IMG/VR virus record: IMGVR_UViG_3300037087_000760
Span: 146,984-210,983 of that record
Strand: one strand, 5' to 3'
DNA length: 64,000 bases
Below, piece by piece: positions 23,517 through 63,025 of this stretch. Under the pieces are notes generated by a model. The model was not told the DNA's origin and did no database searches. It saw only the letters and a list, made by a program, of their open reading frames with translations. A program made the translations under genes and the position numbers. Numbering within the stretch: position 1 is the stretch's first letter; each line of letters starts with the position of its first letter.

Positions 23517-24113
23517 TTATTTTGAAGTTTTCTTGAAATAGTCTATCACTTCTTTGAATTTAACATCAGATTTTATTTCATTAAAATCTAAATCATAGAT
23601 GTCATATACATATTCTTTTGTGTTGTTTTGGTCTACATATATATAAACTATAAACTTGGGATTAACAAGTCTAACATCGAATATGACCTGTGATTCTTTA
23701 TCTTGATCGTTATAGGATTTTATTGCCTCTGGTGAAGTGAATACTAATCCATATCTACCATAAGAACCCAGATTCTTAGTGTATCTACTGTCCATTTTCT
23801 TAGTAGTACAATCCCAAGCCACACTGAAATTACCTGATTGTACTTCTTTCATTCCTGTTTTGGTTTTAGTCAGGGATGAATACCAAGAACCGATACCTCT
23901 GAATCCTGTTTTAAGGATTCCCTCGATATTTTCTTTTTTGGTAAAGTGTATAATGGGTGAATCGGATGGTAATTTTTTAGAACCTATCCAAGAAAATCCT
24001 CTTTGTGGTCTTTTATTCTCAAAAGAAAGGATACAATTATGAAAATCATCGATTGTTTCGATTCTTTGGATGACTTCCTTATTCTTTCTGGTAAACTCAG
24101 TGAAATTATCCAT
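23517..24113 (-). CDS. Tagged protein, ADP-ribosyltransferase-like fold
   Basis: MDNFTEF start; IIHFT..IEGILKTGF..ESQVIF. Confidence 0.5.
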   Translation of the reverse strand: MDNFTEFTRKNKEVIQRIETIDDFHNCILSFENKRPQRGFSWIGSKKLPSDSPIIHFTKKENIEGILKTGFRGIGSWYSSLTKTKTGMKEVQSGNFSVAWDCTTKKMDSRYTKNLGSYGRYGLVFTSPEAIKSYNDQDKESQVIFDVRLVNPKFIVYIYVDQNNTKEYVYDIYDLDFNEIKSDVKFKEVIDYFKKTSK

Positions 24114-24564
24114 ATACTGAAGGTTCATTTTCAGTATATATTAAATCAAATTGAATGGTTTATTTTCAATTTCCTTATACCATTCGAGTATTATTTCAGC
24201 GTTTCTTTTATTAGAATATCCTTCAAAACTATCAGCTATCTTCCATGAATAACCAGCAGCACCGCCCGAAAGAATAGTTCGCCATCTCCATCTTATTTTT
24301 ATCTGAGGATAAAACATACCACCTTTCTCACGGATTCTACTTTTTCTCATAATTAATTTTTTGAGGCCTGATCATTCTCCATATTTTTTTTAAGACTTGG
24401 AATGAGAACATCTTTGGTGAATTCTCGTACCTTATCGGCCAATAACCCGGCTTGTCCAGAAAGAATTGAACCACCCAAAGAATGAATAACGATCAAAAAA
24501 TTAGGATCATTATATTTTTTCTCCAGTTCTTCCAAGTCTTGAATAATAAATTTTTCCTGATCTG

Positions 24565-25050
24565 TCATGATTTCCAATTTTTGAATGGGATTTTAGCTAA
24601 ATTACAATTATAATATTTACTATCCCCTGTAACTTCTTCTTTAATCCAATCTGGTTTTTCAAATGATTCATTTTCAGAATCCAGTTCAATCTCAGCTACT
24701 ATTAATCCACCGTTATGTCCAAAAAACACATCAACTTCCCAAGTATGTCCTTTGTATGGAATGATGTATCTCGATTTGACAATGAAATTTTTCTCACAAT
24801 AGTCTACGATAAGATCAACGGCATCCCCAAAAGGAATTTCATATTCATATTCTTTTCGTGATATAAGTCCAGATCCTTTGACAGTCATGAATCCTTTCTT
24901 TCCAAAAGTTCTAATTCGAACTAATTTTTCATTATCTTCGAACATGAAACCTTGACGAACCTCCACAGATTTATATTTATCTTTAATCTGTAAAAACTTT
25001 TCTTCGTCAACAAGAAATTTTCTTTCGATTTCTAAATTTTTATTTTTCAT
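24565..25050 (-). CDS. CYTH domain protein
   Basis: EIERKFLV, VRIR, EYEYEI, WEVDVF, VAEIEL, EVTGD. Confidence 0.93.
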   Translation of the reverse strand: MKNKNLEIERKFLVDEEKFLQIKDKYKSVEVRQGFMFEDNEKLVRIRTFGKKGFMTVKGSGLISRKEYEYEIPFGDAVDLIVDYCEKNFIVKSRYIIPYKGHTWEVDVFFGHNGGLIVAEIELDSENESFEKPDWIKEEVTGDSKYYNCNLAKIPFKNWKS

Positions 25051-25455
25051 AATCTGTCGAGCTCATCTTCTAAGAAAGAGATTGATCCATATAATACTCC
25101 GAGTAAAGTGGAATTTAAAATAAAGGCCCTTTGTTCTGATTTACTTCCGTGTTTAACTGGTGTAATTTTTCTACGAATTAATTCCTTTTTTTCATCGATA
25201 TAATCAGAATATGAATAAATATCATATTTTTTAAATTTATTCAGAATATATGATGACGATGATTGATCTCTTATAGTGGATGATAGGAAGAAATCAAGAA
25301 TTTCTAAATCAATTGATTTTTCGATTCCATGTTCCAAACGGCTTCTAATAATCTTTAAACCTTCAACAGTAAGATTAGGATTTTCATCTTTTCCAAGATG
25401 TCTATCGGTATCTTCGTGTTTTTTCGAAGAAAAACATTTTAAAATTGACATAGTA

Positions 25456-26301
25456 TTAATCAATAAAAGCGTTGATAGTATTATTTGAATTGTTTTCAGT
25501 AGAGAGATGAATTTCGTGCCATCCGATAAGTTCGATTGTATGATGATCAGGATGTTTTACTTTACCACGACCAAGAACCCTTGCTCCACTAACTCTTTGG
25601 GTGTATCCTATACGATCAAATGGTTTAAGTTTGTTGTATTGGAGTACGGAAATAATCGAATCCCCTTTAACATAGACTGTTTCACCACCAGAACGAACAA
25701 CTTCAGCTACATAGTGAGGTTTTCCACCAGTAGGTCTTGAAATAGGTTCATTTTTATGAATGATAGTGTTTTTATCGGGTTCGAAATGTACAGGAACGAA
25801 AAACCATTCACCCTGACGGACAAATCCTTTGTTTTTACGTTTTCTCCATTCTTTGGTTTTAACACCTTTCTGTTGCATTGCCACGGTTACGGCTTTTGGA
25901 CGAAGTAAGGAGAAAGCTTCACGAATATTTTTAGCCACGGTAACACCTGCGACAAACCAGTGCATTTCATCACGACCAACCAGAAGTCTTTCGGTTGTCG
26001 TATCACCATGTTTGAAATCTTTTACTCTTTCAGTGATCATATGACCACCAGACCATCTTTGATTCATTCTTGGTGAACGAACAAGAAGTAACATTTGTCT
26101 TAATTTCGGATCGTAATCGAGAACATTGATATTAATTTCGGAATCATCAATATCGGGATGAATAGTGAGAGTAAAATGTTCACCTTGTTTATCGGTGGCA
26201 ACATTTAATCTCAGAATACCACCTCTTGGTGAAGTACCTTTGCGGATGGTGATTCTTGCTCCCATCTTCTCGAATTGTTTTTCTAACCAATTTCTTTCCA
26301 T
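25456..26301 (-). CDS. Conserved-looking phage hypothetical protein
   Basis: 281-aa ORF with RQGEWFFVP and HPDH motifs; host-type promoter upstream. Confidence 0.6.
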   Translation of the reverse strand: MERNWLEKQFEKMGARITIRKGTSPRGGILRLNVATDKQGEHFTLTIHPDIDDSEININVLDYDPKLRQMLLLVRSPRMNQRWSGGHMITERVKDFKHGDTTTERLLVGRDEMHWFVAGVTVAKNIREAFSLLRPKAVTVAMQQKGVKTKEWRKRKNKGFVRQGEWFFVPVHFEPDKNTIIHKNEPISRPTGGKPHYVAEVVRSGGETVYVKGDSIISVLQYNKLKPFDRIGYTQRVSGARVLGRGKVKHPDHHTIELIGWHEIHLSTENNSNNTINAFID

Positions 26302-27174
26302 GACACTATATATTGTAACAAATTTATCTTAAATTTCCATTTTCATTTAAAAATATTTCTTTTCCATGAGTTACAAAGATAAGAAATACTTTCAAATAAA
26401 AAAATTATAAATCAACTTTTTCGAACAACTTCTTATTAAGTTCCAAAAACTTAGTTTCAAAAAGAGCCTTCACATATACTCCATCATTTTTAAGGAACAC
26501 TTCGTTTTCGAAACAAATTAATGTCGTGCCGGGTTTAGCGGTGATGTGATTTGAATCATCAACTGGTATATTAAAAAATTGAGTTGTCTTATATACCTTA
26601 ATGTCTCTTTCTGTTTTTGAAACTTTCTGTGCTTCAATTGGTCTCCTACTTTCGTTTATAAATTCCATAGGTGATTTAATATTTTTATAATCCATTCCAT
26701 ATTATTATTTTTTTGTAAGAAAGTCTACGATATCACTCACTGAGTTCTTAGCTGTTTTGTAAGCACTTTCTGAATCAAAACCTAATGACTGTATATATTC
26801 ATAATAATTGTACCTCTTTTTATTGAAGATGTACCAAAAACAAATATTAATCTTTTTCATCTATTCTATCGTTTAAAAATTTAGCTAATTTTTTAGCTTC
26901 CTCAGATTCCAAAACAATTTGATCATCATATATTCTACCAGTAAAAAGATGATAAAAAGCGTATCTGATACGACCAAAAATCAAACTCCTTATAGTCTGT
27001 TGACCATTAGTATATATGGCAATGTAAAACAATTTATCTTCTTCATCGTACTGAATTTGGATCAAATGAGTTCCACAACTACACTCTGATACATGCTTCG
27101 TTTTCATGTTGAATAAATTTTTATGGTTTTATATTATATCCTTGAATATAGTGAAATGTTTCGAAATAAAAAAT

Positions 27175-28137
27175 TTATTTGATTTCTATTTTTATGTTTG
27201 GTATGAAAATATTTACTTTATCAAGATCATCTATTAAATCTTTCTTGTATAATTTAGGATACCAATTTGAATCATATTCGATACCAATTATATATTTATT
27301 AATACCTTTTATACAATCAAAATTATTTGATGGATCATATTTCAAATTAAGTTCAGTATGAGAATTACATTCTACTCTTTCTTCAGCTTCGTGTTTAAAA
27401 TATGGATCTTTATGATATAAATGAGATCTAATTTTAAAATGATGGCTCATTCTATCACCATCGAATGTTATTTTAACTGGATGGTTATTATAATTTAGAT
27501 TTTTATTTCTCGAAAAAGATATAAAATGAAATAAGGAAATCATTCTATCATCTTTTAAAATATTCTTCAAATTATCCAAAGTTGTCCAATGATATAAGAA
27601 TCCAACCTGTTTTGACTCTTTTAATTCACAACCCCAATTATAATTTCTCTCCCTTTGATATTGTTTTATTATTTCAACTAAACTTGACCAAAAGACAACA
27701 GCTGTAGTTCCTACCCCTTCTTTAAATTTTATTGAATCGTATCCTTTCTTTTTAAGTTTGGGAACTATATGATATTCCCTATCCAATATTTCTAAAACTT
27801 TATATGGTGAAAAATAATCATAACCATAGAATCTTTGTTTCCTCATAAGATCATTTAATTCTGTTTCGGGTATAGGTAACGATCTCAATAATTTTTCATA
27901 ATTATCAATTCCTTGCTCTCCATAAGGTGTTAAATCCAATGTTTTTTCCAAGTGAAGTTTAACTACATAGATATATTTTCCATATCTTTTCGATTCCTTT
28001 TCCGTATCGGAGAAATATATTCCCATTCTACTTTTTGTAGTATCTCGTCTGGTTTTAAATGATGTAATATCATCATTATAACTTCCATGATACCAAATTT
28101 CATTATCATTATTGAATTTTTCAAAAGTGGTTAACAT
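27175..28137 (-). CDS. Tagged protein with two ART-like domains
   Basis: WYHGS..GIYFS..YG..GYDSI; LYHWT..ISFSR..EAEERV. Confidence 0.6.
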   Translation of the reverse strand: MLTTFEKFNNDNEIWYHGSYNDDITSFKTRRDTTKSRMGIYFSDTEKESKRYGKYIYVVKLHLEKTLDLTPYGEQGIDNYEKLLRSLPIPETELNDLMRKQRFYGYDYFSPYKVLEILDREYHIVPKLKKKGYDSIKFKEGVGTTAVVFWSSLVEIIKQYQRERNYNWGCELKESKQVGFLYHWTTLDNLKNILKDDRMISLFHFISFSRNKNLNYNNHPVKITFDGDRMSHHFKIRSHLYHKDPYFKHEAEERVECNSHTELNLKYDPSNNFDCIKGINKYIIGIEYDSNWYPKLYKKDLIDDLDKVNIFIPNIKIEIK

Positions 28138-29122
28138 ATGATGTATTTATCTTTTCTTTCTATCTGGTTGATCATATGGAATGACATATCCAATCTTATT
28201 CTTATCATCATATACACCGAATACGAATCCGAATTGCTTTATCATATCTAAATATGGAATATGCTGATTCTTTTCATCATTTACCCAAGAATGTCCACAA
28301 CTAAAAAATCTACAATTTTGGATAGCCTTATCATATTCTTCTTTACTATGAACGACTGTAACCTGTGGATGCTTTTTTAAATGTTCCTCGGCTATTTTAT
28401 AACCATAAATATCACTTTCAACTCTTAATTCTGGATGTTCGTTTGTTCCGATTTCAGGAAATTCGAGTAATCCCGGCATTGGTTTTTGACCCAACATTAA
28501 ATCTTCATTTGTTTCATCCTCTAAATCAAAAACAACATCATATAATAATTCTCTGACATATTCTATTTCTTTTGGATATAAATAAGTTCTGTATTTAAAA
28601 AGAACTTGTCTTACAATCTTTTTGAATTTATTATAATCATCATCATTCATTATCATAGCCCCAATATATGGCTGAATTTGTGGATCTTGTTTAATTCTTT
28701 CAAACCATTTTTTGGCTCTTTCGTAGGTGAAAACAGGTTCATCTTCAAATCTTTCATTAACAAATTCTTGAAACTTTTTCATGATGTTGTTTTTTATTGA
28801 TATATATAAAATAAAAAAACCGGATGTTATCCGGCTCAAATGTAAAGATCATATATTAATAACATATGATCTCTAAAATTTTCTCGATCCACACTATCAC
28901 CAGCAAATTCGTGTTTCTTGATATATTTATTATACCATCCATTAAATAAATCATTAACCATTTTTCGAGTTAATTGATTTCGGAAAATATCACTATGAAC
29001 TTTCCCTTTACAATAAAACTCACATACATAATCAATAAACTCTTTTTTCATTTCTGGTGAAAGATCTGAATTTTCATTTAAAGACTGAGAGAAAGATTCA
29101 AAAGTTTTTAAGTTTTTCATTC

Positions 29123-34431: not shown

Positions 34432-34442
34432 TTTATTTTAAT

Positions 34443-37972: not shown

Positions 37973-38003
37973 ACATTTTTCTTATTTTTTGATATAATAT
38001 ATT

Positions 38004-38810
38004 ATGATAAAGAAATTTAATGCCTATAAATCATTGACATTGAAATACATGATATTTGATTGGGATAACAACATTCTACATATGCCCACTCCAATTCATA
38101 TCGAAGTCTTAAAAAAAGGCAAATGGATTCCAAAAGATATACTACCAGAAGAATTTGCCAAAATAAGAACAAATGAAAATTGGAGAAACAGGAATAATGA
38201 TTTTGTATTGACATTTCAAGAATTTAGAGATACAGGGCCAAGGGGTAATAAATCTTTTCTCGAAGATGCTAAGAAATCTGTTTTGAGGGGTAATTTTGGT
38301 CCCTGTTTTCAAGATTTTATCAAAACATTAATCAATGGTAATATTTTTCTTATTATTACCGCTCGTGGTCATGAACCAGAAACAATAAAACATTTTGTTA
38401 AATGGCTGATTTGTAATTATTTGACTCCAGAACAAAGAATAAAAATGAAAAAAAATCTGGAGAAATTTCAAAAACTTTTTAATTCAAAAGATTCCACCAT
38501 TCATTCTTATTTGGATACTTGTGAGTTTATTGGTATTATGTCTCAATATTTTAGAAATAGATTTGGATTGGACTTTGAGAATACCCAAAATGTTGAAGAG
38601 GGTAAGGAATTGGCCATTGATTCATTCTTGATTAGATTACAAAATTTTGCCACTAAAATCGGAGCTAAATTAAAAGTAGGTTTCTCCGATGATGATGAAA
38701 ATACTGTAAGACATATGACAGATTTCTTTAAAGAGAAAGATCTTGATGTCGCTGTTGATTATTATATTTTCAATACTTCAAATAAGGGGAAAGAAAAAGT
38801 TAAGATATAA
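38004..38810 (+). CDS. HAD-superfamily hydrolase
   Basis: FDWDNNI, ITARGH, K, GFSDDD. Confidence 0.75.
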   Translation: MIKKFNAYKSLTLKYMIFDWDNNILHMPTPIHIEVLKKGKWIPKDILPEEFAKIRTNENWRNRNNDFVLTFQEFRDTGPRGNKSFLEDAKKSVLRGNFGPCFQDFIKTLINGNIFLIITARGHEPETIKHFVKWLICNYLTPEQRIKMKKNLEKFQKLFNSKDSTIHSYLDTCEFIGIMSQYFRNRFGLDFENTQNVEEGKELAIDSFLIRLQNFATKIGAKLKVGFSDDDENTVRHMTDFFKEKDLDVAVDYYIFNTSNKGKEKVKI

Positions 38811-39333
38811 CCTCTATTTTCAATATATCTGAATAAAAAGTATCAAACACTAATATTTCTTTTTCTGAATTATATTCAGACCATCCAGAGATTTGTGATC
38901 TGGTTATTGGATTTGTTATTAATTTTTTTTGTCTTTCAGTTATTTTATCCATAACCAAATCCAAAGATACTGGATATTTAACATCTTTTAAGTCTAAGGT
39001 ATATAAGTAAGAAAACATATCTTCCGAATCTGGTTCAATAAAACCCATGGCAATTTCCTTTTCGTATGACCAAGATATACCAGCGTTGTTCTTAGGTGAA
39101 AATCTAATTGGTTTCGTTATTTCATAATCTCTTGATTCTCCCCTATAAACTAAAGTATTTTTTGTCATTTCTTTAACTAAGTTATAACTTTCCTGAAACA
39201 AATTTGAAGGTATTTTGTTTACATCTTCAATAAACTTTATAGTTTGTTGTGCAAAGAAATCCATAAACCAGATGGCTAATTCATCTGGTATTGATTCTTT
39301 CATTCCCTCAAATACTTTAAAATTTACAATCAT
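38800..39333 (-). CDS. Tagged R-S-ExE type ADP-ribosyltransferase-like protein
   Basis: LVYRG, ISWS...A..F, SEKEILV. Confidence 0.7.
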   Translation of the reverse strand: MIVNFKVFEGMKESIPDELAIWFMDFFAQQTIKFIEDVNKIPSNLFQESYNLVKEMTKNTLVYRGESRDYEITKPIRFSPKNNAGISWSYEKEIAMGFIEPDSEDMFSYLYTLDLKDVKYPVSLDLVMDKITERQKKLITNPITRSQISGWSEYNSEKEILVFDTFYSDILKIEVIS

Positions 39334-39503
39334 AGATTTATATATTAAAATCCACAATTATTTTCTTATCGTCTGGACTGAATTCGATATTCACTGAATG
39401 AATATGATTTTTTAATTCCTCTGTTAATTCCAAAACTCTTTTCATTATTTTTGATTTAATCTGATCGTTGTTCATTTTATCTTTTTATTTTTATATATAG
39501 AAA

Positions 39504-41060
39504 GTGATGAAGTTAGACAAAGAAACATATGAGAAAATCATTCATTCCAAAGAGTTTAAGGATTGGTTTGGTGATTGGGAACATCCGAATAAAAAGACCA
39601 GTAAAATAGTGGATAAAAATGGTAAACCATTGGTAGTTTATCATGGAAGCCCTTATAAATTCACAGAATTCAAATATGGTATGAATGATACTTCTGGTCA
39701 GATGGGTGCTGAATATGCTTTTTGGTTTTCAAACCTGAATGTTGCAACACATTATTCACAATGTTATCCAAGATCGTATTACAATGAAAGGAATGAGGTT
39801 AACGAGAAATATAACGAGAAAATAGAAAAAGACAAGATTGAATTTTTAAAGACGGTAGATATGTCGGTATGGGATGGAATGTTATCTTTCATAGAAAAGG
39901 AGTATGGTAAGTCTACTGGTTATTATAATTTAAGTAGTTGGGTGAAATCAGATAATTGGAAAGAAGTATCAAAGACATTGATGGATTTATTGTTTTGGAT
40001 AGGTAAGAAGAACATAGATGAAATCAGTCCAAAACTAAGTGAATTTGTACACTTGGATAAAAAATACGATATTGAATTGAATAAGGAATTGGAAGAAATT
40101 CAAAGTAAATACGACAATCAAGAGGGTTACATATATCCATGCTTTATAAAAGCGACAATTATTGAGGAAGAAGATGGGGAGAATGTAGGTGTGGGTTTAA
40201 ATCGAGTTCCAGATAGTAGTATTCATTGTAAAATAATCAGGAATGCGGACACTGGAGCACAGTTCGCTGATGAATATGTGGTAACAAATCCTAAACGAAT
40301 AAAAATAGCAACTGGTGAAAACACAACTTTCAATGGAAAGAGTAAAAATATTTATGAAAATCATCATAGAATGATAATCAATTTTGGAGAATTTGAATTT
40401 GTATTATTAGAGAAGAATAATGAATCGATAGATGGTCAGACTATGTATAACAAGTTAATAAAAAGGTTTCCTGAAATTAACATTGACAGACCAGAAGGTA
40501 TAAGTGGTGAATCCATAACGATATGGGGTATTTATAAAGGTCATGATAAATATGAAGATATTTACAAGTGGTATGAAGATTTAGATGATAAAGAGTTTAT
40601 TGACAAGTTATTGAAATACATAAACAAATTTGGTTGGTATTCAAGGGCATCAATGACAAGGATTAAGAACACACATACATTAAGTATTTCTCCGAAGTGG
40701 AGTAAGGGGTATGTATTAATTCCAGATACATTATATCATGCTTGTCCAATGTCCAGATTAAATGATATTTTGAAACATGGTTTAAAATCCAAGTCGGAAG
40801 ATATTCGACACAAGTACCCACCGAGAATCTATATGTCTACGAACAAAGAGGTTTTATATTCATTAATAAAGGAATTAAAAGTATGGAAGCAGATAGATAA
40901 AACAGATAAAGAACCATATGCGATTGTGGGTATAAATACAGATGATTTGAATTTAGGTATATTATATAAAGACCAAATGAGTTTATTTACAGGTAATTGT
41001 TACATACAAGGAAAGAGCATACCAGCTAAATACTTATGGGTAGTTGATAAAAATATATAA
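39504..41060 (+). CDS. Multidomain protein: ART-PolyVal-like N-terminus plus Tpt1/ART-like C-terminus
   Basis: FKDWFGDW..DKNGKPLVVYHGS..IKIATGENTTF; LYHA..ILKHGL..RIYMS..IPAKYL. Confidence 0.7.
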   Translation: MMKLDKETYEKIIHSKEFKDWFGDWEHPNKKTSKIVDKNGKPLVVYHGSPYKFTEFKYGMNDTSGQMGAEYAFWFSNLNVATHYSQCYPRSYYNERNEVNEKYNEKIEKDKIEFLKTVDMSVWDGMLSFIEKEYGKSTGYYNLSSWVKSDNWKEVSKTLMDLLFWIGKKNIDEISPKLSEFVHLDKKYDIELNKELEEIQSKYDNQEGYIYPCFIKATIIEEEDGENVGVGLNRVPDSSIHCKIIRNADTGAQFADEYVVTNPKRIKIATGENTTFNGKSKNIYENHHRMIINFGEFEFVLLEKNNESIDGQTMYNKLIKRFPEINIDRPEGISGESITIWGIYKGHDKYEDIYKWYEDLDDKEFIDKLLKYINKFGWYSRASMTRIKNTHTLSISPKWSKGYVLIPDTLYHACPMSRLNDILKHGLKSKSEDIRHKYPPRIYMSTNKEVLYSLIKELKVWKQIDKTDKEPYAIVGINTDDLNLGILYKDQMSLFTGNCYIQGKSIPAKYLWVVDKNI

Positions 41061-42256
41061 TACAACTTTCAATGGAAAGAGAAAAAATATTTATGAAAAA
41101 TCATATGATAACAAAATTTAAAATGTTTGAATATCACGAAGAAAATATAAATAAAATATTGGATAAAATAAACAAACACGGTAAAGATTCTTTAACGGAT
41201 TTTGAAAAAGAAATACTTCAGAATCAGGGTGATATAAAGATACAAAAATATTATGAAAAAGGACATTTTGAATTTGATTATGACTCTACAAAAAATGAGG
41301 ATAAAAAAATAATTGTCAATGGAACTTTAAAATATAAAGGAAAAGAATATCATGGTTGTTTCACCTATCCCCAAGAAATAGAACATGAATCGTCAATAGA
41401 TGATAAATTTTATAGTGCATCTTATGGATTCTGGAAATTCTTTGATGAAAGAAATCTTGAATTTGAACCAGATGATGATGATTTTTATGATTTAGATGAT
41501 TTGATGCAGGAAGTAGAAGCCAACTTTGTAAATTAATATATACATTCATGATAAAGGATTTTTTAACATATATAAAGGAAAATCAGGGATCACCCGTAGA
41601 TGGTCGTTACGGATTCTATATGTTTTTACACACATTAGATGAAATGAAATTTTCATTTATTAAATCTGGAAATTATTTGAATACTGGAAACTTCCTTTAT
41701 TTTTTTAGAACCGAGTGGATAAAAAAACCAATAGATGTATTAGATGGATTTGAATTTAAAGATTCTGTTAAGAATACATTCAGAACATATGGTAAAATCA
41801 GTAATGAGAAATTATCTTTTTATTTCGGTATCAGGAATGGTATTTTAGAATATGGTTTTTATAATGATCTAAAAGATGTTATTTATAAAACTGGACAATT
41901 AAATATAAAAGACAATGAATTGAGACAAATAAAATCATATAGTTGTTTAGCTATGATAAGTGGGGTACTGAGAATAGCATCCACTAAAACATTAACTTTA
42001 TTACATGAAATCAAAAAAGATCTAAAATATTTCTTTGAAGATAAGACCAGTAAAGGAATAATCATCTTAACAACTATGAGACTCAGAAAAGTCATTTCAA
42101 AAGAATTATTAAAAGATAATATGAAAAATTCCGATGATCTAACTAATACTTTTGTTGAATGGTGTAATAAATATCCTTGGGGTAAAAAGATAGAAGCATA
42201 CATTGATGATTCCGAGGATGATGTTTCTTTCTACATAAAAATAAAATCCAAGAATA

Positions 42257-42841
42257 GTGATAAACCTGTTGTCTTATAATAGTTTCATTAATGAATCTAA
42301 AATATATGAACATCCATTATTTCATGGTTCTGGCCGTAAATTTGATATCTTTGACTTTAATAGATTGGGTCAAGATGGTCATTTATTAAGTTTTCTTGGG
42401 ATTCATTTTACTGAAAATGATACTGTTGCTGAAAGATTTACAAATCCACCTGATTATATTATCTACGAAATAGAATTGAAATATAACAAATTCTTGAAAA
42501 TAAAAGAGGGTAATTTAGTCAAAGAAATGTTGAAGTTTGGACTTGAAAAAAAGATAATCGATTTATCAATTTTTCCATCAAAAAACATATTTGATTTACC
42601 ATATTTTGGAACAAAGAATTGTTTAATGAATCAATTATTTAATTTAACAGATGGAAAAGCAAAAGAAATTTCATTGGAATATAAAAACCACCTAATGAAT
42701 CAAGGATATGATTGTATTAAGTATATAAATGAAATAGAATCACCAGACATTAAAAGATTTGATTGGATTATCTTTAAATCAGAACAAATAAAAGTATTAA
42801 AAGTGTGGGATTTAAAACCAAGATTGGAAATAAAATGGTAA
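42257..42841 (+). CDS. Tagged ART-like protein
   Basis: LFHGS..FLGIHFT..GYDCIKYINEIE..WIIF..QIK. Confidence 0.65.
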   Translation: MINLLSYNSFINESKIYEHPLFHGSGRKFDIFDFNRLGQDGHLLSFLGIHFTENDTVAERFTNPPDYIIYEIELKYNKFLKIKEGNLVKEMLKFGLEKKIIDLSIFPSKNIFDLPYFGTKNCLMNQLFNLTDGKAKEISLEYKNHLMNQGYDCIKYINEIESPDIKRFDWIIFKSEQIKVLKVWDLKPRLEIKW

Positions 42842-43425
42842 CGAAATTTTACATATTTGAAAAAAAAAACAATATAGTTGGTCCATTATATCATGGAAGT
42901 GGAATAGTATTCGATAAATTTTCAAATGAAAAATTAGGAAGTAGCCGAAATGTTGTACATTTAATGGATTTTCTTGGAATTCACTTCACCCCCGATAAAA
43001 AAATGGCCGAAAGATTATTCTCAAAACCACCCAATTATGTTGTTTATGAAGTTGAAATCAAGGTTAACAAGATTTTAAAAAAGAGAGAAAGTCAATTAGT
43101 GAGGGATATGCTGAAATGGGGAGGTGAAAATGACTATGTTGACAAGGAATTCATTGAAAAGAATTACTTATTATATAGAACATATAGTAATATAACACCA
43201 TTCGATAGAGAAAATAAAATAATTTCATTGAATCATTTTCTATTAGAAGATAACACATTTGATAAAAAGAAATTAACACTTGATTACAAACAATATTTAA
43301 TTGAACAGGGTTATGATTCCATACATTATTTGAATGAAATAGAATGGTCATCAGATGAAAGATGGGATTGGATAGTTTTTAATGATAACCAGATAAAAAT
43401 AATTAATATATACAAGGGTAAATAA
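42835..43425 (+). CDS. Tagged ART-like protein, tandem paralog of 42257
   Basis: LYHGS..FLGIHFT..GYDSIHYLNEIE..WIVF..QIK. Confidence 0.65.
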   Translation: MVTKFYIFEKKNNIVGPLYHGSGIVFDKFSNEKLGSSRNVVHLMDFLGIHFTPDKKMAERLFSKPPNYVVYEVEIKVNKILKKRESQLVRDMLKWGGENDYVDKEFIEKNYLLYRTYSNITPFDRENKIISLNHFLLEDNTFDKKKLTLDYKQYLIEQGYDSIHYLNEIEWSSDERWDWIVFNDNQIKIINIYKGK

Positions 43426-47174: not shown

Positions 47175-47588
47175 TTAAACTTCATCTATAATTCTATCTG
47201 GTGGTATGTTTCTTTCTACATAAACAGCTTTACCATCTTCACCTTTTGAAAATTGAGAACTCCATTCACTCATATCACTTGCTTCTTCATCCTTAATTAA
47301 ATCATAACCTGATAAATCGACTTTCCATATTGTCATCTCTTGTGGATTATATCCATCTTCTTCATTGAATTCTTTAAACCATTCAGCATATTTCAAATCC
47401 AACCAAAAATAATTTCTTATTGGTGACATTTCTTTTTTACCAAGTCTGGAATATCTTTCTTTTGGTATCTTTTTAATACCCTCTTTTAAAATTTTGGAAT
47501 CTAATTTCGATGGAGCTACATGATAACCAACGATTATCTTCTCAGAATTCTCATTTATACTTAAATAATCATCAAAGTTCAGAATCAT
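47175..47588 (-). CDS. Tagged ART/Tpt1-like protein
   Basis: GYHVA..ILKEGI..NYFW..NIPPDRI. Confidence 0.55.
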   Translation of the reverse strand: MILNFDDYLSINENSEKIIVGYHVAPSKLDSKILKEGIKKIPKERYSRLGKKEMSPIRNYFWLDLKYAEWFKEFNEEDGYNPQEMTIWKVDLSGYDLIKDEEASDMSEWSSQFSKGEDGKAVYVERNIPPDRIIDEV

Positions 47589-48211
47589 CGTCACCATCAC
47601 TCGTTTGGAAAAAAGTATTTAAATCTTCAATATGAACTTTCTTTCTACCAGATGATACGGGTTTTCCCTCTTCTTCTGGTTCTTCTGGAATTAAATCTTC
47701 ATCATCTGGATCTGGTTTATTCCAAACATCATCTTCTTCTTCCTGTTCATGTTCTGTATTTTCATCATCAGATAATTCCTTTGGTTTAAATTCTATTTTG
47801 TAAATAAGTTCTCCACCGACTTTAGAATGACCTGATGAATCTTTACTTTTTTCTTTTTCTCTTTCGGTAGCTTCAATTGCCTGAACAAATATTAGAGTAA
47901 CATCGAATTTTCTTTTCTTTGATGGACCTTCTCCCAATTCCAGTTCAAGATGTTGTTGAGGATCAACATAATTAAAATCTTCGGGATTAACTTTAAATCT
48001 TATCATATCACCATCAAAAGTTTTCTTTAAAGCATGATCAAAATTACCATCTACTATGGTCTTTGCACTTTTGGTCACTTCTTCTGGTAATTCGGCTATA
48101 GTTGTTTTTTTATTTTCTTTAATGAAGGAATCAAAATTCATAATGAACTTGTTCATGACTAATTGGTTTTTCTTTTTATATATTAAAATAAAAAAATCAA
48201 TTTTCAACCTG

Positions 48212-50340: not shown

Positions 50341-50386
50341 AATTGTTATTTATTATTTTTTTAATTATATATTACCTAATAATGGT

Positions 50387-50864: not shown

Positions 50865-50865
50865 A

Positions 50866-53135: not shown

Positions 53136-53183
53136 ACTTCTATCCTATTAAAATGTATAAAGTAAAAAATATTTCAGAATATA

Positions 53184-53963: not shown

Positions 53964-54017
53964 ATTTTTTTATTCCATAAATTCTTCGTACCTTTGTACT
54001 ATCAATGTTAATAGTAC

Positions 54018-54455
54018 ATGCAGATGTATAATCTTTTTCTCGATGATGATAGGTTTCCGTTTAATGGGGGTACAGATGTTCCCGTTGATTTCGAATTAGA
54101 CAGTGCTTATGATTTGACAAGAGATAAAAGATATAAAGATCTTGATTGGGTAATCGTCAGAAGTTTTCCACAGTTTGTTGAGATGATAGAAAAAAGAGGA
54201 TTACCAGAAATGATTTCTTTTGATCACGATCTTAAAGATGAACATTATTATCATTACAGAACATTCACAATATTTACTGGTTGGATTGATTATACCGTAG
54301 TAGAGGGAACAGGACATGAATGTGCAAAATGGTTAATTAATTATTTACTTAATAACGATTTGGATTGTCCTACAATTCTTATACATACACAAAACACCAC
54401 AGGTGCAAAAAATATCTGGAAACTATTTGAAAACTTTAATGAAAACAGGAAATGA
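54018..54455 (+). CDS. Cyclic-phosphate-processing receiver-like domain
   Basis: LFLDDDR, ISFDHDL, TG.ECAKWL, IHTQN. Confidence 0.75.
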   Translation: MQMYNLFLDDDRFPFNGGTDVPVDFELDSAYDLTRDKRYKDLDWVIVRSFPQFVEMIEKRGLPEMISFDHDLKDEHYYHYRTFTIFTGWIDYTVVEGTGHECAKWLINYLLNNDLDCPTILIHTQNTTGAKNIWKLFENFNENRK

Positions 54456-56962: not shown

Positions 56963-57794
56963 AAATAAAAATTAATTTAACAAAAATAAATTATTATGAC
57001 AACAAAAACTAAAATTATCATTTGGGCGATAGTACTATTCGTATTATTCGTGATTGGTTTCTTCTGGTTATTGAGCCACGCCTTCGTCATCATGACATTC
57101 GGAACTATTTTTAAAATTGCCGGAGCCTTTATCCTTGCAGTATTTATTTCTTACTGGATTGGTTATGGGGTTTGTCATCATAAAATAACTACGAAAAATG
57201 AAAAAGGATAAAATTAAAGAATGTATTGGAGAATGTAAATTCAATTTATATGTGAGTTTATTTCTATTCTTCGGATTCTGGTTCATTTTCATGTTTTTCT
57301 TGGCCTTCGTAATTAGTTGGTGGTCTATTCCAATTGGGATTTTTATGGGATTACTTGTCACAATTACAAGAGGTGGGGATGCTTATTTTACTTATCAGGA
57401 TTCAACAACAAATGTAAATGTGGGTCAAATGACCAGTTCATCTTCCAAGTTGAGTTATATCAATTTAAAAATAGTTGGGGATAGTGATGAATTTGGTAAA
57501 ATGATTTGTAAGGTTGAAAGTATTGATGGTAAATATATTGATGGTGTTACACTGAAATTACCTAAATCTGAAATTTTCGTGAAGAAAAGATACTTTTGGA
57601 AACAAACTTTTAAAGCTATCGGGTAATGAAAATGAAAATACCAGTAGCAATAATAGTTTTTGTTACGATGTTATTCGAATTTTTAATGAGTATTTGTTTG
57701 TTCATTGTACAGGATTACATTATGTCCATAGTTTTATTCACTATATCTGGAATATTATTTTGGATATTAATAATTTTAATTAAAAAACTAATAA

Positions 57795-58241
57795 ATGAAT
57801 CTCGAAGAGAAGATTAATTCCGATATCAAAGAATCAATTTTAAGACAAGAAAACGAAAAATTAGAGGCTCTTAGATTGATTAAATCTACTATTCAGGTTG
57901 AAAAAGCCAAAGATGGTAAAGAACTATTGACTGATGAACAAGTAATGAAAGTTATTCAGAAAATGGTTAGTCAGAGTACAGAATCCGCTACTCAATATGC
58001 TCAAGGGGGTAGAGTGGATTTGGTTGATCATGAAATGCTTCTTATTACAGTCTATAAAACATATCTTCCAGAACAATTATCAGTTGAAGAAATCACTGAA
58101 AAAGTGAAAGAAATCATAACTGAAACTGGAGCCACTTCAATTCGTGATATGGGTAAGGTGATGGGTGTGGCCACCAAATTCTTTTCTGGTCGTGCAGATA
58201 ATAAAACTATTGGTTCAATCGTAAAAACTATACTATCATAA
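57795..58241 (+). CDS. GatB/YqeY domain protein
   Basis: ALRLIKS, YLPEQLS, DMGKVMG, GRAD. Confidence 0.93.
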   Translation: MNLEEKINSDIKESILRQENEKLEALRLIKSTIQVEKAKDGKELLTDEQVMKVIQKMVSQSTESATQYAQGGRVDLVDHEMLLITVYKTYLPEQLSVEEITEKVKEIITETGATSIRDMGKVMGVATKFFSGRADNKTIGSIVKTILS

Positions 58242-58947
58242 CATTTTAAAAAATAAAAAATAATCTTATGGAAGATACTTTCAAGTTTCAGATAATGTTG
58301 GAGGCAGGAACACATATAAAATATGTAAAACTTACCGATATCGTAAAACATTTAGATGCTCAAATTAAAGCAATAGATTCAGATGATATAAAAGAAGTGC
58401 TCGAGCATATAAGAAGTGAATATATCAAATTATTATAAACTCCATTTAAACTTTTTTGTTCATGAAAATCTGGAAATATAAATTAACCAAAAATCCGAAT
58501 GATTATGAAGGTGATGGATTCACCATTCAGGAAGAAAATCATGGTAAGAAACCCAACAAAAAGACTTACAGCATTTGGCACGATCCATTTGAAGGGGGTC
58601 AGGCTTATGATTCTGATTGGACTATTGTAAACGAAGAAACATTCCCAAATTTAAATCTCCCAGATTTAGGTGAATGGAAATCATTCGATGAAGCATACAA
58701 ATGGATTGTTGATAATTTCGGTGAAATAACAGAAATCGAAATTGATTGATTTTGTTAGAATAAATTAAAGTTGATTGATTATGAGTAAAGAAGATTTATT
58801 AAAAATATGGCAACAAAGGGCAAAAGAATTACACGAAATTGCTGATAATGAGAGGATAAATTTTCCAGATAGAATTGAAGCCGGTGCAAAAGCAAATCAA
58901 TTATTACAATGTATGCTCGATATAAAACAATTTTTAGAGGAAAAAAT

Positions 58948-59790
58948 ATGAATATAAAACAATTTGAAATAAACGGTAAGGGAAAAGTTGATATTAATTT
59001 AAATGATATTGATTTGAATGATGTCGATTCCGATATTACCGAACAAATAGAGGGGAACATAAAAAGCCTCATTGATTTACAGGATAAGTTATATGCTGAT
59101 GGTAAATATTCAATACTATTAATTATTCAAGCGCTTGATACGGCTGGTAAAGACGGAATCGTTAAGCATGTAATGTCGGGTCTTAATCCCCAAGCAACTC
59201 AGGTTTATAGTTTTAAACAACCCACTTCAGAGGAATTGAATCATGATTTCTTATGGAAAGCTCACAAAAGTTTACCAGAGAGAGGACACATTGGTATCTT
59301 TAATCGTTCCTATTATGAAGAAGTTCTCGTAGTTAAGGTTCATGATCTGATAAAATTTCAGAGAATTCCAACCGTTTTGATTCATAAGGATATCTTTGAA
59401 GAAAGATATGAACAGATAAGAAATTTTGAAAAGATGCTTCATAAAAATGGAACAGTCGTTATAAAAATATTCTTGAACATATCCAAAAAAGAACAAAAAG
59501 AAAGATTACTGGAGAGGATTGATGATAAATCTAAGAATTGGAAATTTTCGGAATCTGACTTAAAAGAGCGTCAGTTCTGGGGTGATTATATGAAATGTTA
59601 TGAAGATCTGATTAATGAAACATCCACCGATGATTGTCCTTGGTATGTTGTTCCGGCCAATCATAAAAAAACATCACGACTTATTGTTTCGAAAATTTTG
59701 GTTGAGAGAATGAAAAAATTAAATCTGGAATATCCTCAATTAACAAAAGAGCAAGAACAGAATTTATTGAAATGTAAGGAACAATTATAA
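58948..59790 (+). CDS. ppk2: Polyphosphate kinase 2 family
   Basis: QALDTAGKDG, FKQP..EE..HDFLW, FNRSYYE, PWYVVPA. Confidence 0.95.
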   Translation: MNIKQFEINGKGKVDINLNDIDLNDVDSDITEQIEGNIKSLIDLQDKLYADGKYSILLIIQALDTAGKDGIVKHVMSGLNPQATQVYSFKQPTSEELNHDFLWKAHKSLPERGHIGIFNRSYYEEVLVVKVHDLIKFQRIPTVLIHKDIFEERYEQIRNFEKMLHKNGTVVIKIFLNISKKEQKERLLERIDDKSKNWKFSESDLKERQFWGDYMKCYEDLINETSTDDCPWYVVPANHKKTSRLIVSKILVERMKKLNLEYPQLTKEQEQNLLKCKEQL

Positions 59791-59825
59791 AAGAAAAAGG
59801 GGTGTCAACGACATCCCTTTTCTTT
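59790..59825. terminator. Bidirectional terminator between convergent genes
   Basis: AAAGAAAAAGGGGTGTC-AAC-GACATCCCTTTTCTTT. Confidence 0.8.
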
Positions 59826-59840
59826 AAAGTTTATTGAGAA

Positions 59841-60089
59841 TTACTTCTTCACAACTTTCTTTGTTTTCTTTGTACATTTCTTTGTACATTTGGTAATAGA
59901 ATCAGCCTTCTTAATAGAATCAGCCTTTTGAGTTAAAACTAAAACCTTCTGAATTGAATCTTTCTTAATAGAATCAACTCTGATAGAATCTGTTTTTGCT
60001 TTAGCCACAGCTTCCTCTTTGACTGTGTTGTTACAAGCCGTAAAAGAAACAATCATTAAAATACTTAAAATTGCAATTAACTTTTTCAT
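59841..60089 (-). CDS. Small lipoprotein
   Basis: Signal peptide ending FTAC, repeated DSI motifs. Confidence 0.75.
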   Translation of the reverse strand: MKKLIAILSILMIVSFTACNNTVKEEAVAKAKTDSIRVDSIKKDSIQKVLVLTQKADSIKKADSITKCTKKCTKKTKKVVKK

Positions 60090-60256
60090 AATTTTTATTT
60101 GTTTTATTATTTTTTATACCTGTTATATCACAGGTTTCAATATTTGTTTTAAAAAATTTTAACATTTTTTAACATTTGTATATATATTATAATTTTTCCA
60201 AAAATTTTCCAAATTGGAAAACAATATATATTCTAATAAAACTAATCAGTGTTTTT

Positions 60257-61078
60257 ATGATAAGATATACTCAAATAAAAGAAATGTTAGACAAGAAGAT
60301 AAATCAAAGAGAATACAACGATGTACTCAAGCAAATGGGAGTAATGAGCGAGGATGGTAAGGTGGATCTTCAAAACATGAAGAAAAAAATCGGTGATTTC
60401 TTAGAAGTTGAATCCAATAGAACTAAATTTTTAAAAGAAGTTGAAGAAAATGACATAGAGGGAGAAAAGGTCAAAATAAGGGCTAAGAAACTCAATCCCG
60501 GTCAGACAACCATTTACTTGGACCAAATTATATCAAGGATTCTAAGTAACGCAGAATTCGTCAAGGATGTTATTAAAGGTAAGTATAATGACAGAGATAT
60601 CTTAATCAGTTCAGATAACTATATTATTGATGGTCATCACCGATGGGGTTCTGTATTTATCCTAAACCCAAAATGTAAAATTAAATGTACCAAAATTAAT
60701 CTTCCAATAGAAAAGGCACTACCTATTTTGAATGCTATTTTAAAAGAATATCAATCCAGAACTCAAGATCAAACTGGTGAACAGAAGTACAATCTTTATA
60801 AATTAGCAAAAGAGGAAAAATTACCAGATAAACTTCAAAAGATAATTAAAAAAATGGCTGATGAAGATCCTTGGAGAACAGGTAAGGATAAAACTAAAAT
60901 GGTTGAAGATCTCTATGAAAAAATCTTTCATAAAGATAAGAAAAAATTAAGTCCAACTGAATATCTAGCTAAAAACATTAAAAAAATTCCAAGTCCTCAT
61001 AGTGAATTCACCGAGAGAAAGGAAATGCCACAATTAAAGAAAAAAGATGTTGAAAAAATAGTTAAGGAAAAAGATTAA
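60257..61078 (+). CDS. ParB/Srx-like domain protein
   Basis: L.PGQ, ILISSDNYIIDGHHRW. Confidence 0.75.
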   Translation: MIRYTQIKEMLDKKINQREYNDVLKQMGVMSEDGKVDLQNMKKKIGDFLEVESNRTKFLKEVEENDIEGEKVKIRAKKLNPGQTTIYLDQIISRILSNAEFVKDVIKGKYNDRDILISSDNYIIDGHHRWGSVFILNPKCKIKCTKINLPIEKALPILNAILKEYQSRTQDQTGEQKYNLYKLAKEEKLPDKLQKIIKKMADEDPWRTGKDKTKMVEDLYEKIFHKDKKKLSPTEYLAKNIKKIPSPHSEFTERKEMPQLKKKDVEKIVKEKD

Positions 61079-61108
61079 TGATGTCCCTTACCTTTATAAT
61101 CAATCAAT

Positions 61109-62008
61109 CTAAAATTTTCTAATTTTTTCTACGAAGCTGAATAATTTTCTAATATATTCATCTTTCTTATATGAACTGGTCATTAAATAAACACAATAAA
61201 CAAAATACATCATTTTATTAATTACAATATTTTCATTTATATTTTCTCCACCAACTTGACGAAATTCTACATAGTTTTTATTGAATAATTTCCAAAAATT
61301 AATATTATAAGTTTTTTGAGTGGATGTAAATATTTTTTGAATAATTTGTTCAATAAGGTTCTCTATTTGATTCTTATTCATGTCAGTTATATTTCTATTA
61401 TTAGATGTCTTTTGATAATTTTTATCATTGTTTATTATCATCATAAAAATCTCAGTCTTTAAACTACTACAATATCCACAGGTTTTTCGAGCTTCAATGT
61501 TTTTAAATGTATAATCATCCGATAACATCATAACACCTTTAACAACATTCCATCTTGATTTCGGTTTTTTTGTACCGATATTAATATGAATACTTGTTTT
61601 ATCATTAAAAAACCATTTATTTTGTTTTTCAAAATCTTCGAAAAATATTTTAATGAATTCTTTAGATTCTTGTAAGCTATGAAATGGTGGAGTTACAAAT
61701 TCCATTCCAGATGAAACTGTCCCTTCATAATGATATTCCAAAATATCGAAATATTTTCGGAAGAAATTTGGAAAATTATTTTTGATATCCATCACTTTTC
61801 TTCTATCCTGAATCGATAATACATTTAATTTCTTCGATTCATTGGTTATTATTTTTGGGGGAGTAGGTAGACTTCTAATTCTTCTATGGTCAGTGTCCAT
61901 TTCAATTTCAAATCCGATGGTAAAATAGTCATCCAAAGTCTCTAACAACGAAACATCTTTTTTCTGAAATTCCAAGAGAAATTCATCATATGTTCTAAAA
62001 TTTTTCAT
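61109..62008 (-). CDS. Tagged putative amidoligase (COOH-NH2 ligase)
   Basis: TIGFEIE, EFVTPP, SIHINIG, YNINF, VEFR. Confidence 0.75.
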   Translation of the reverse strand: MKNFRTYDEFLLEFQKKDVSLLETLDDYFTIGFEIEMDTDHRRIRSLPTPPKIITNESKKLNVLSIQDRRKVMDIKNNFPNFFRKYFDILEYHYEGTVSSGMEFVTPPFHSLQESKEFIKIFFEDFEKQNKWFFNDKTSIHINIGTKKPKSRWNVVKGVMMLSDDYTFKNIEARKTCGYCSSLKTEIFMMIINNDKNYQKTSNNRNITDMNKNQIENLIEQIIQKIFTSTQKTYNINFWKLFNKNYVEFRQVGGENINENIVINKMMYFVYCVYLMTSSYKKDEYIRKLFSFVEKIRKF

Positions 62009-62445
62009 AAATATCTTATTGATGTTTCTTTTGTTATTTTTTCTTTGAATACTTCTTTAAATTTACTTGAATCAATTCCCATAATTACAAATGTTCCTAC
62101 TGCATTGTAAGAATCTAACCATGTTTCAAAAAATGATCTGTTCCCATCATCATCATCAACTACCCATTCTAAATTTAATATTTCTTCATCTATCACAATT
62201 TCAAACACGACAGCCGTTAATTTATCGTATTCCTTATCCCCATTATGTATCATTCCCTCTGTTCGACTTATAGCGTGATATTGAGCATGTTCTTCTTCAT
62301 CTGTTACAAATAAATAACTTTTCTCCAATTCTCTCCAAGTTTCTAAGGTAGTACCATGATACATTTTTTTACCAAATAATTCTTCTTTGGTTTTTATGTT
62401 GGTAGATTCAAGTAAAAAGTCTTTAAATGTTTTAAAATGGTCCAT
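62005..62445 (-). CDS. Tagged ART-like protein
   Basis: MDHFKTFKDFLLES; MYHGT..LFVT...A..HA. Confidence 0.55.
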   Translation of the reverse strand: MDHFKTFKDFLLESTNIKTKEELFGKKMYHGTTLETWRELEKSYLFVTDEEEHAQYHAISRTEGMIHNGDKEYDKLTAVVFEIVIDEEILNLEWVVDDDDGNRSFFETWLDSYNAVGTFVIMGIDSSKFKEVFKEKITKETSIRYL

Positions 62446-63025
62446 CTATGAATTTTATATTCTTTTTATCATATACTCCATATGATATGCCATAATCCTC
62501 TTTTTCAGTTATATAATCTGTTAAAGAATTTTGAAAATATTGAAATGAATTGTATTTCAAATAATTATGTATGAAATAATCGAAATACTTACTTGATTCT
62601 ACATGACGAGTGTATATGGTATCAAAAAATTCTCCCATCTGAATAGTATCTTTAAATTCACTTTCAAAATTATAATTCTGTAATTCTCTCAAATATGTTG
62701 GATTCTTATTCTCTAATATGATACGAAAATCATTTAAAAGACGGTTCGCTTCAAATACTGGTATCTCACGATTCATGTCCAATAAAGGTTCTTCCAATGT
62801 TATTTCAAATTTACAAGTATATATTTTTTTACCTCCCCTCATCGGATAAAATCTTATATCTGGACTGCTGGAAAAATAAATGGCACGACCAAATATGGAA
62901 ATATCACTACTATGGTCCATTTTGAAATCAGCTTTTAACATATGTTCCAATTGGTTAGATAAGTGATAAGCTATTACTTTCTTACCCCCCTTAGCTTCCA
63001 ATAAAAATTCAGTAAATGTTTTCAT
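62432..63025 (-). CDS. Tagged ART-like protein
   Basis: MKTFTEFLLEA; AYH..FGRAIYFS..YGVYD..NIK. Confidence 0.6.
   Translation of the reverse strand: MKTFTEFLLEAKGGKKVIAYHLSNQLEHMLKADFKMDHSSDISIFGRAIYFSSSPDIRFYPMRGGKKIYTCKFEITLEEPLLDMNREIPVFEANRLLNDFRIILENKNPTYLRELQNYNFESEFKDTIQMGEFFDTIYTRHVESSKYFDYFIHNYLKYNSFQYFQNSLTDYITEKEDYGISYGVYDKKNIKFIDGPF

Follow-up and report, generated by a model that had tools for sequence, protein, structure and literature searches.

The idea that phages carry ADP-ribosyltransferases (ARTs) in their heads is not new, being familiar from T4 Alt, the ARTs of polyvalent proteins and MuF-fused ARTs. Alt is packaged in the T4 head and processed by gp21 (PMC5694885, PMC9026906). 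Phage ARTs are often head-packaged, and delivery coupled to the DNA is presumed for those of polyvalent proteins (PMC9503650). The T4 capsid-targeting sequence (CTS), MKTYQEFIAE, is removed within the prohead, and whatever is joined to it gets packaged (PMC8442874). Mutagenesis of the CTS assigned targeting mainly to residues 4 and 7 and processing to residues 8 and 10 (PMC9026906); cleavage occurs after a Glu behind a short motif and frees Alt as well as the internal proteins of N-terminal propeptides (PMC5694885, PMC9026906). Here we analyze a 64,000-nt stretch of DNA, called the window below, that covers bases 146,984-210,983 of the 210,983-bp IMG/VR virus record IMGVR_UViG_3300037087_000760 (G000). 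The window contains open reading frames (ORFs) for seven proteins with an ART fold or family assignment, a short N-terminal tag that is enriched in the record and conserved among orthologs, and genes for salvage of nicotinamide adenine dinucleotide (NAD). We consider it moderately probable that the stretch from 23.5 to 63 kb of the window belongs to a large uncultured phage with a diversified set of CTS-tagged ARTs that are packaged in the head and injected.

A sequence-only reading of the window had listed at least nine ART-like proteins on the strength of short motifs. Every one of its nine coordinates is the boundary of a real ORF, with likelier starts at 42835 for the ORF listed from 42805, at ATG 39333 for 38800 and at 47588 for 47175, and the H-type motifs (YHGS/HGT/HFT..IYFS/IHFT) read as it described. 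We name the proteins by these coordinates, and the two domains of 27175 and of 39504 by the suffixes N and C (Table 1). Seven of the nine proteins, and eight of 11 domains, have support for an ART fold from hidden Markov models (HMMs), structure or family; 23517 and 39504-C are weak, and 38800 offers a motif only. What stands is a diversified set of tagged ART-fold proteins, probably injected, as the tag suggests; the full count of nine does not.

Kinds of ART module

The H motif is far more frequent in the record than chance allows. A combined pattern ([YFIL]H[GFWALV][ST], 12-60 residues, [ILVFAM][YHWF][FM][ST]) run on 353 crude ORFs of the record matched nine; 200 shuffles gave 0.21 matches on average and 2 at most. 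Of the nine, five are candidates from the sequence-only reading and three come from outside the window; the ninth, the PnuC gene at 15117, is a false positive. The excess over chance is large, but short motifs by themselves do mislead. Pfam, PHROGs, NCBIfam and PADLOC gave no match for five of the proteins (62432, 62005, 47175, 23517 and 38800) or for either second domain, so structure or profile evidence was needed for these. Pairwise phmmer comparison found no significant paralogy among the candidates, which are therefore too diverged to be linked directly. At least three kinds can be told apart: an ART-PolyVal-like kind (27175-N, 39504-N, 42257, 42805 and the divergent 62432), a minimal kind resembling PARP, Tpt1 and DUF952 (47175 and 62005), and a kind resembling HYD1, DarT and Tpt1 (27175-C, with 23517 as a possible distant relative).

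Profile matches firmly assign 27175-N, 39504-N and 42805 to ART-PolyVal (PF18760, gathering score 31.2 bits), with 42257 falling just under the cut-off. The scores are 41.2 bits for 27175-N (E 3.7e-10, residues 15-151), 39.2 bits for 39504-N (E 1.5e-9, residues 37-276), 40.9 bits for 42805 (E 4.4e-10) and 31.0 bits for 42257 (E 4.9e-7), the last 0.2 bits short; 62432, 62005, 47175, 23517 and 38800 have no match to this model at E<=1. Alignment by hhalign to the polyvalent-protein profile gave 98% for 27175-N, 97.9% for 42257 and 98.8% for 42805. Our own profile, built from 69 polyvalent-protein domains, recovers all four (E 1.4e-29 for 39504-N) and two copies outside the window; the Pfam model finds five ART-PolyVal copies in the record. 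Only 39504 opens with the FKDWFGDW lead-in that precedes ART-PolyVal in giant polyvalent proteins. An IMG/VR scan with full-length 39504 returned 110 loci, all polyvalent proteins, matching only its first ~50-140 residues. The proteins of the window themselves are of 194-518 aa and are standalone or two-module, not parts of polyvalent proteins.

The predicted structure of 62432 firmly indicates a divergent ART-PolyVal/PARP-like fold with the split beta-sheet core of ARTs. The AlphaFold2 (AF2) model built with 14 orthologs has a predicted local distance difference test score (pLDDT) of 77.5, and its best match in BFVD is a 'PolyVal ADP-Ribosyltransferase' (E 3.6e-7, template modelling (TM) score 0.55/0.56). 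Nearby AFDB clusters include several ART-PolyVal-like ones (E 2e-5 to 3e-3), DUF3990, RES and PARP; VIA-align superposes the model on the tankyrase catalytic domain with Z of about 9 over 116 residues at 2.8-2.9 A; and in the ESM Atlas DUF3990, ART-PolyVal and RES are matched at TM 0.55-0.63. The family keeps YH.S and IYFSS, and Q165, N166, T169 and D170 are invariant. A search of PDB sequences with the family profile found no ART match. The top PDB match of 62432 is a chain of the cyanophage A4 pre-ejectosome, which hints at proteins stored in the capsid; the paper describes no ART domain in it, and we drew nothing from this match. On a related contig a T4 gp13-like gene adjoins a 62432 homolog. 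Elsewhere (P0008, L087 10001-11026) a homolog is fused behind a 140-aa tagged domain with a YRAGD ... motif, and an internal I-L-E-S-K-K junction lies at the usual position of the tag end.

The two shortest proteins, 47175 and 62005, are moderately supported by their models as minimal ART folds. Their ESM Atlas models have predicted TM scores (pTM) of 0.70 and 0.65, respectively. Structural neighbours of 47175 are DUF952 (TM 0.56/0.60), PARP, Tpt1 and a Tad6 cluster, with feature matches to PARP and Arr-ms clusters; those of 62005 are DUF3990 (TM 0.58), Tpt1, DUF952, Pertussis_S1/Scabin, PARP and RES. DUF952, DUF3990, Tpt1, PARP, Pertussis_S1 and RES are all members of the Pfam ART clan (PMC7955679), within which nearly all structural neighbours of both proteins fall. 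An IMG/VR scan with 47175 found no relatives. Predicted structures, which the sequence-only reading had named as the check on its fold calls, thus agree with them confidently for 62432 and moderately for 47175 and 62005; those of 23517 and 38800 are taken up below.

The second domain of 27175 appears to represent a new, unannotated family of H-type ART-like domains, an assignment we hold with moderate confidence. Exhaustive phmmer searches with 27175-C retrieved 276 representative clusters (50% identity) at E<=1e-3, which conserve YH.T, SFTRN, DGD and E.EE; no model in Pfam or PHROGs covers them. Of 72 family members scanned singly, 10 gave weak matches to Tox-ART-HYD1, two to DarT and two to Tpt1, and unrelated families matched one member each. 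Against the PDB, Tpt1 and DarT make up four of the five top matches of the family profile at non-significant E values of 0.2-0.8, and three collagenase rows tie with them. Alignment with the 62432 family by hhalign reaches 87%, with the tag, His motif, helix and [ST] strand in register.

Members of the 27175-C family are found singly and in tandem. Standalone members from many metagenomes have the same tag directly before K-Q-V-G-x-LYH.T. In the tandem proteins P0028, P0030, P0038 and P0051 (291-1829 aa), which hold 2-5 modules of this type, most module junctions read [ILVMF]-x-E-[GA]-K-Q-x-G-x-LYH.T and resemble the end of the tag, and within 27175 the two ART modules are separated by L-K-E-S-K-Q-V-G (window 27600-27660). 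One standalone protein of 27175-C type, with MKTYNEFINE as its tag, has as neighbour on the contig of P0151 (Logan SRR21524771) a gene with a DUF2441 domain, a member of the ART clan. Other phages therefore also show small ART-like genes in clusters.

Further ART-like ORFs lie in the record outside the window: a strong ART-PolyVal copy, a tagged copy in which R replaces the His, a 552-aa tagged protein that holds a second domain of 27175-C type (E 6e-18), and one weak candidate each of Tpt1-like and HYD1-like character. Six-frame searches of the record with the Tox-ART-HYD1, Tpt1 and DUF3990 models gave weak matches, all in ORFs outside the window.

Table 1. Coordinates of the candidate ART modules, of tagged neighbours and of other features discussed in the text; positions are those of the window unless G000 is named.
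Feature	Position	Strand	Description
23517	23517..24128	-	203 aa; IIHFT motif; loose tag MDNFTEF; ATATATA 6 nt upstream
27175, N-terminal module	27673..28137	-	in 320-aa protein; loose tag MLTTFEKF, then predicted ART-PolyVal (WYHGS ... IYFS)
27175, C-terminal module	27178..27660	-	YH.T / SFTRN / DGD / E.EE; preceded by L-K-E-S-K-Q-V-G
38800	38800..39333	-	177 aa; tag MIVNFKVFE; R-S-ExE motif
39504, predicted ART-PolyVal domain	39612..40331	+	in 518-aa protein; ~100-aa insertion; no tag
39504, C-terminal domain	40680..41057	+	LYHACP ... ILKHGLK ... RIYMST ... IPAKYL
42257	42257..42841	+	194 aa; ART-PolyVal-like; strict tag MINLLSYNSFINE
42805 (start 42835)	42835..43425	+	196 aa; predicted ART-PolyVal; tag MVTKFYIFE; ORF listed from GTG 42805
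47175	47175..47588	-	137 aa; tag MILNFDDYLSINE; GYHVAPS motif
62005	62005..62445	-	146 aa; strict tag MDHFKTFKDFLLE; MYHGTT motif
62432	62432..63025	-	197 aa; strict tag MKTFTEFLLE; motifs AYHLS and IYFSS
Further ART-like ORFs outside the window	G000:C1 91732-92607, 71965-72450, 118998-120656, 17562-18293, 108435-109232		
Strict-tagged protein	28147..28782	-	MKKFQEFVNE; directly upstream of 27175, same strand; ATATATA before it
Strict-tagged protein	41548..42279	+	243 aa; MIKDFLTYIKE; first ORF of same-strand run 41548-43425; ATATATA 5 nt upstream
Acidic strict-tagged protein	47572..48156	-	MNKFIMNFDSFIKE; directly upstream of 47175; ATATATA before it
Strict-tagged protein, function not assigned	61109..62008	-	299 aa; MKNFRTYDEFLLE; directly downstream of 62005/62432; overlaps 62005 by 4 nt
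ATATATA examples	24135-24141, 39339-39345, 39493-39499, 41536-41542, 12850-12856		
NAD synthase (NadE-like), 3' part	1..868	+	PF02540 E 5.1e-9; full ORF G000 146079-147851
Isochorismatase-family, nicotinamidase candidate	1138..1860	+	PF00857 E 3.5e-8
PnuC-type transporter of nicotinamide riboside or nicotinamide mononucleotide	15117..15731	-	PF04973 E 6.1e-42
NadR-like protein, cytidylyltransferase-like and AAA_28 kinase-like domains	18836..19825	+	PF01467 E 6.3e-5, PF13521 E 5e-20

The N-terminal tag and its possible function

The tag recurs across the record at the start of proteins. In its strict form (M, 1-6 residues, then aromatic-x-x-aromatic-aliphatic-x-E) it opens 23 of the 353 ORFs, compared with a mean of 1.8 (maximum 6) in shuffled N-termini, and it follows only two of 864 internal Met positions; 13 of the 23 tagged ORFs lie within the window. 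In 62432 all four positions mapped in the CTS hold the T4 kind of residue: F4, F7, L8 and E10, compared with Y4, F7, I8 and E10 of T4. Its orthologs have the consensus MKTYTEFLLE, in which F7 and E10 hardly vary. With an offset of 1-3 residues, the same core recurs in 42257, 62005 and 20 other ORFs. The T4 gp21 protease has the cleavage consensus [LI]-x-E, and a second form of the tag (MITKFKLFE, MIVNFKVFE, MVTKFYIFE) likewise ends in [LIV]-x-E.

The statement that nearly all of the ART candidates are tagged is right only in a loose sense: 42257, 62005 and 62432 carry the strict form and 27175, 38800, 42805, 47175 and 23517 a looser one (aromatic-x-x-aromatic), and 39504 is untagged. The first ART strand begins within ~10 residues of the tag in nearly all tagged candidates. 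By analogy with T4, we read the tag as a putative T4-type CTS. If so, it would attach the protein to the scaffolding core while the prohead is being assembled, the prohead protease would cut after the Glu of the tag, and the mature ART module would remain in the head to be ejected, together with the DNA, into the host. There, with NAD+ as substrate, it would modify host proteins, nucleic acids or small molecules; alternatively, it might interfere with defence based on NAD or ADP-ribose. The tag, and no demonstrated head-assembly system, is what leads us to infer packaging; cleavage and injection are likewise inferred, as are the use of NAD, the targets and a possible coupling to the NAD salvage genes.

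A bolder proposition is that tag and [ILVM]-x-E junction together form a modular 'address and cut' system of T4 type on dozens of cargo proteins, with multi-module ARTs as polyproteins cut by the prohead protease and the 27175-C type as a widespread family of injected effectors. The polyprotein idea comes from the L-K-E-S-K-Q-V-G junction of 27175 and from metagenomic proteins of 1200-1829 aa with 4-5 tandem modules. A system of such scale has not been described before, and we regard this proposition as doubtful.

Several strict-tagged proteins sit directly beside the ART candidates (Table 1). Those at 41548..42279 and 61109..62008 have no match in Pfam or PHROGs. Window-wide, the motif ATATATA, often behind a run of A, stands ~5 nt or ~20 nt upstream of start codons. 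It precedes 25 of 67 loosely tagged ORFs; for the remaining 286 the count is 37 (Fisher p 1.1e-5). As it is not over-represented genome-wide, we take it for a likely phage promoter, and the 5-nt class suggests leaderless transcripts.

Weighing the rival explanations

Several findings weigh against an injected set of nine functional ARTs, and they feed three rival explanations. By the first, 38800, 23517 and 39504-C include at least one non-ART with coincidental short motifs, and the window would count seven proteins, not nine; we put its chances slightly short of even. The R-S-ExE signature claimed for 38800 is present, and its motifs (YRGE.R / GISWS / SEKEILVF) show little or no variation among 10 orthologs, the most distant at 53% identity, an argument against coincidence. 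The claimed ART fold gained no support from any tool: the AF2 model made with those orthologs has a pLDDT of 34, and neither the PDB, searched with the family profile, nor Pfam, PHROGs, PADLOC or NCBIfam yielded an ART match. The spacings in 38800, 23 residues from R to S and 70 from S to ExE, are atypical for R-S-E ARTs such as C3, iota and cholera-type enzymes. We list it as a motif-only ART candidate, unsupported otherwise. The ESM Atlas model of 23517 (pLDDT 0.63) has Tox-ART-HYD1 and AbiGi as its best rows at TM 0.38-0.41; one DarT/PARP cluster matches by features (0.90), hhalign with the 27175-C family reaches 46%, and a scan of JGI metagenomes found no relatives. These values lend slight support to 23517 as an ART-like candidate. 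For 39504-C we found a single homolog (42% identity) and, in an IMG/VR scan, no relatives. Four of the six PDB matches of its profile are RNA 2'-phosphotransferases with E 0.6-1.4, all on the H motif, and its HMM ranks, next after itself, other ART candidates of this genome at non-significant E values of 0.012-0.22. This makes 39504-C weakly Tpt1/KptA-like at the level of a motif; like 47175, it is a single lobe of ~125-140 aa with no Pfam match to Tpt1/KptA (PF01885). The weak matches of both 23517 and 39504-C all fall in families of the ART clan and are not scattered, an argument for keeping them as candidates.

The other two rivals concern activity and delivery. Many of the proteins might have ART folds without being transferases, binding NAD or ADP-ribose instead, or inhibiting the NAD-based immunity of the host (TIR, SIR2, RES, Thoeris-type), packaged or not. 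The third catalytic residue, which is not conserved, favours this explanation: judged by eye against the E-Y-V-V-F segment, it is Asp in 42257 and 42805 and Thr in 27175-N, and the whole 62432 family has Ser at this position, with no Glu at the expected strand, beside its four invariant residues. So does the first structural row of the 47175 model, the Tad6 cluster. Tad6 counters Thoeris defence and binds ThsB (PMC13728456). The investment of this phage in NAD salvage would also suit an NAD-centred conflict. The Tad6 match, however, covers only part of a 374-aa protein (TM 0.24 in that row), most copies retain the NAD-binding H and [ST] motifs of ARTs, and ART-PolyVal itself tolerates residues other than Glu at the third position: Glu is present in just 16 of 48 polyvalent ART-PolyVal domains. 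Since the position varies even there, catalytic competence is unreadable from the sequence, and we dropped the attempt to read it from the third motif. On these grounds a set consisting largely of non-transferases seems unlikely. The remaining rival takes the proteins for cytoplasmic enzymes acting after infection, like T4 ModA and ModB, and the tag for something other than a CTS: a start context of leaderless mRNAs, or a signal for localisation, degradation or assembly. It draws on the searches for a head protease and portal, in which Peptidase_S77, Peptidase_S78, Portal_T4 and the T4 tail tube gp19 were not found in the 211-kb record (completeness ~71% by CheckV). No full-length gp23 was found in the record either; two adjacent short ORFs (70 and 98 aa; G000:C1 125652-126150, L089 1486-1984) match pieces of the model of the T4 major capsid protein, Gp23, that are separate and out of order, at 28 and 19 bits. 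These fragments, like the gp13-like gene beside a 62432 homolog, speak for the tagged-ART reading. The lack of any tag on 39504 is a point against packaging. In many tagged genes ATATATA is only ~5 nt from the ATG, so that transcripts could be leaderless and the first codons might matter, and an AT-rich genome favours N-termini rich in K, N, F and I. Against this, the conserved positions of the tag are the very ones mapped in T4 (aromatic 4 and 7, aliphatic 8, Glu 10), the tag varies among orthologs as a protein sequence does (F/Y, L/I), the [ILVMF]-x-E junction recurs within multi-module proteins far from start codons, and the strict form outnumbers its shuffled expectation as given above. 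We consider a tag unrelated to capsid targeting quite improbable, and prefer the reading of the locus as a set of tagged ARTs that would be packaged and injected.

NAD genes, genome context and known systems

The statement that NAD salvage genes accompany the ARTs is borne out: Pfam matches identify four of them at 1-20 kb of the window (Table 1). Phage NAD salvage is known as a counter to host defences that deplete NAD. The genes here may serve that purpose, or they may feed the ARTs. No Macro domain was found in the record, a point against the tagged-ART reading. A cyclic-phosphate processing receiver (cREC_REC, 54018-54455), a CYTH protein (24565-25050) and a PPK2 polyphosphate kinase (58909-59790) are also encoded, and may be part of the same network of conflict over NAD and nucleotides.

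The window has a GC content of ~30%, with ORFs dense on both strands, and 21 tRNA genes. These form two arrays, at 7426-11508 (+) and 22186-23007 (-), and are heavily redundant, with 8 Leu, 6 Gln and 3 Asn. IMG/VR labels the record a provirus. In other assemblies, an identical copy of the 38800 protein turns up on contigs that measure 230 kb and as much as 736,551 bp. We conclude from this that the phage is large and that the record is incomplete; 211 kb may be far below the size of the true genome, or of its host context. Against GenBank phages, megablast with the window from 35.5 to 47.2 kb and tblastn with 27175 gave 0 matches each.

If the proteins are packaged and active, ~ten different NAD-using enzymes would be delivered at infection, compared with the single Alt of T4. 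Such a set would be a source of new ADP-ribosylation specificities and of counter-defence against NAD-based immunity. With the tag as a simple mark, one could list proteins that are candidates for injection in uncultured T4-related and huge phages, and at least one large, currently unannotated ART-like family would gain a predicted role. A transferable short packaging tag beyond the T-even phages would, if confirmed as such, be useful for loading cargo into capsids.

The H-type ART families Tpt1/KptA, DarT and Tox-ART-HYD1 share with 27175-C, 39504-C, 47175 and 62005 a hydrophobic-YH-x-T motif followed by an L..IL..G helix and a second, [ST]-bearing strand. Unlike those families, the modules reach no family threshold, are too short for the N-terminal RNA-binding lobe of Tpt1 and lack a DarG-like antitoxin context; their weak matches suggest relatives of Tpt1, DarT and HYD1 within the superfamily, not members. 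The likeness to ART-PolyVal of phage and conjugative-element polyvalent proteins is seen by HMM in three or four proteins, by predicted structure in 62432 and in the FKDWFGDW lead-in of 39504. In contrast, the domains of the window are freed from giant polyvalent proteins. They make up small proteins, standalone or of two modules, that have multiplied into paralogs and bear a T4-like tag. With MuF-fused ARTs the locus would have in common capsid-loaded, co-injected ARTs, and it shares a phage-encoded NAD network; it differs in the ART families and in the proposed use of a short cleavable peptide instead of fusion to a structural domain (PMC9503650).

The closest parallel is the CTS-dependent set of internal head proteins of T4. 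Both have an N-terminal tag of ~10 residues with aromatics three apart, an aliphatic residue and Glu; both have diverse and fast-evolving cargo; and in T4 the cargo includes an ART, Alt, which the prohead protease processes and which is injected. Neither a T4-type portal nor a gp21-like protease turned up in searches of the ~71% complete record. Internal proteins with a CTS number a handful in T4, whereas the record holds 23 strict and about 60 loose tagged ORFs with at least 11 ART-like modules, and most modules here are of H type, unlike Alt, an R-S-E enzyme with its own short propeptide. Compared with these known systems, what is new here is the multiplicity of ART modules, the joining of freed ART-PolyVal and other modules to a tag of T4 type, an unannotated ART-like family and possible processing as polyproteins.

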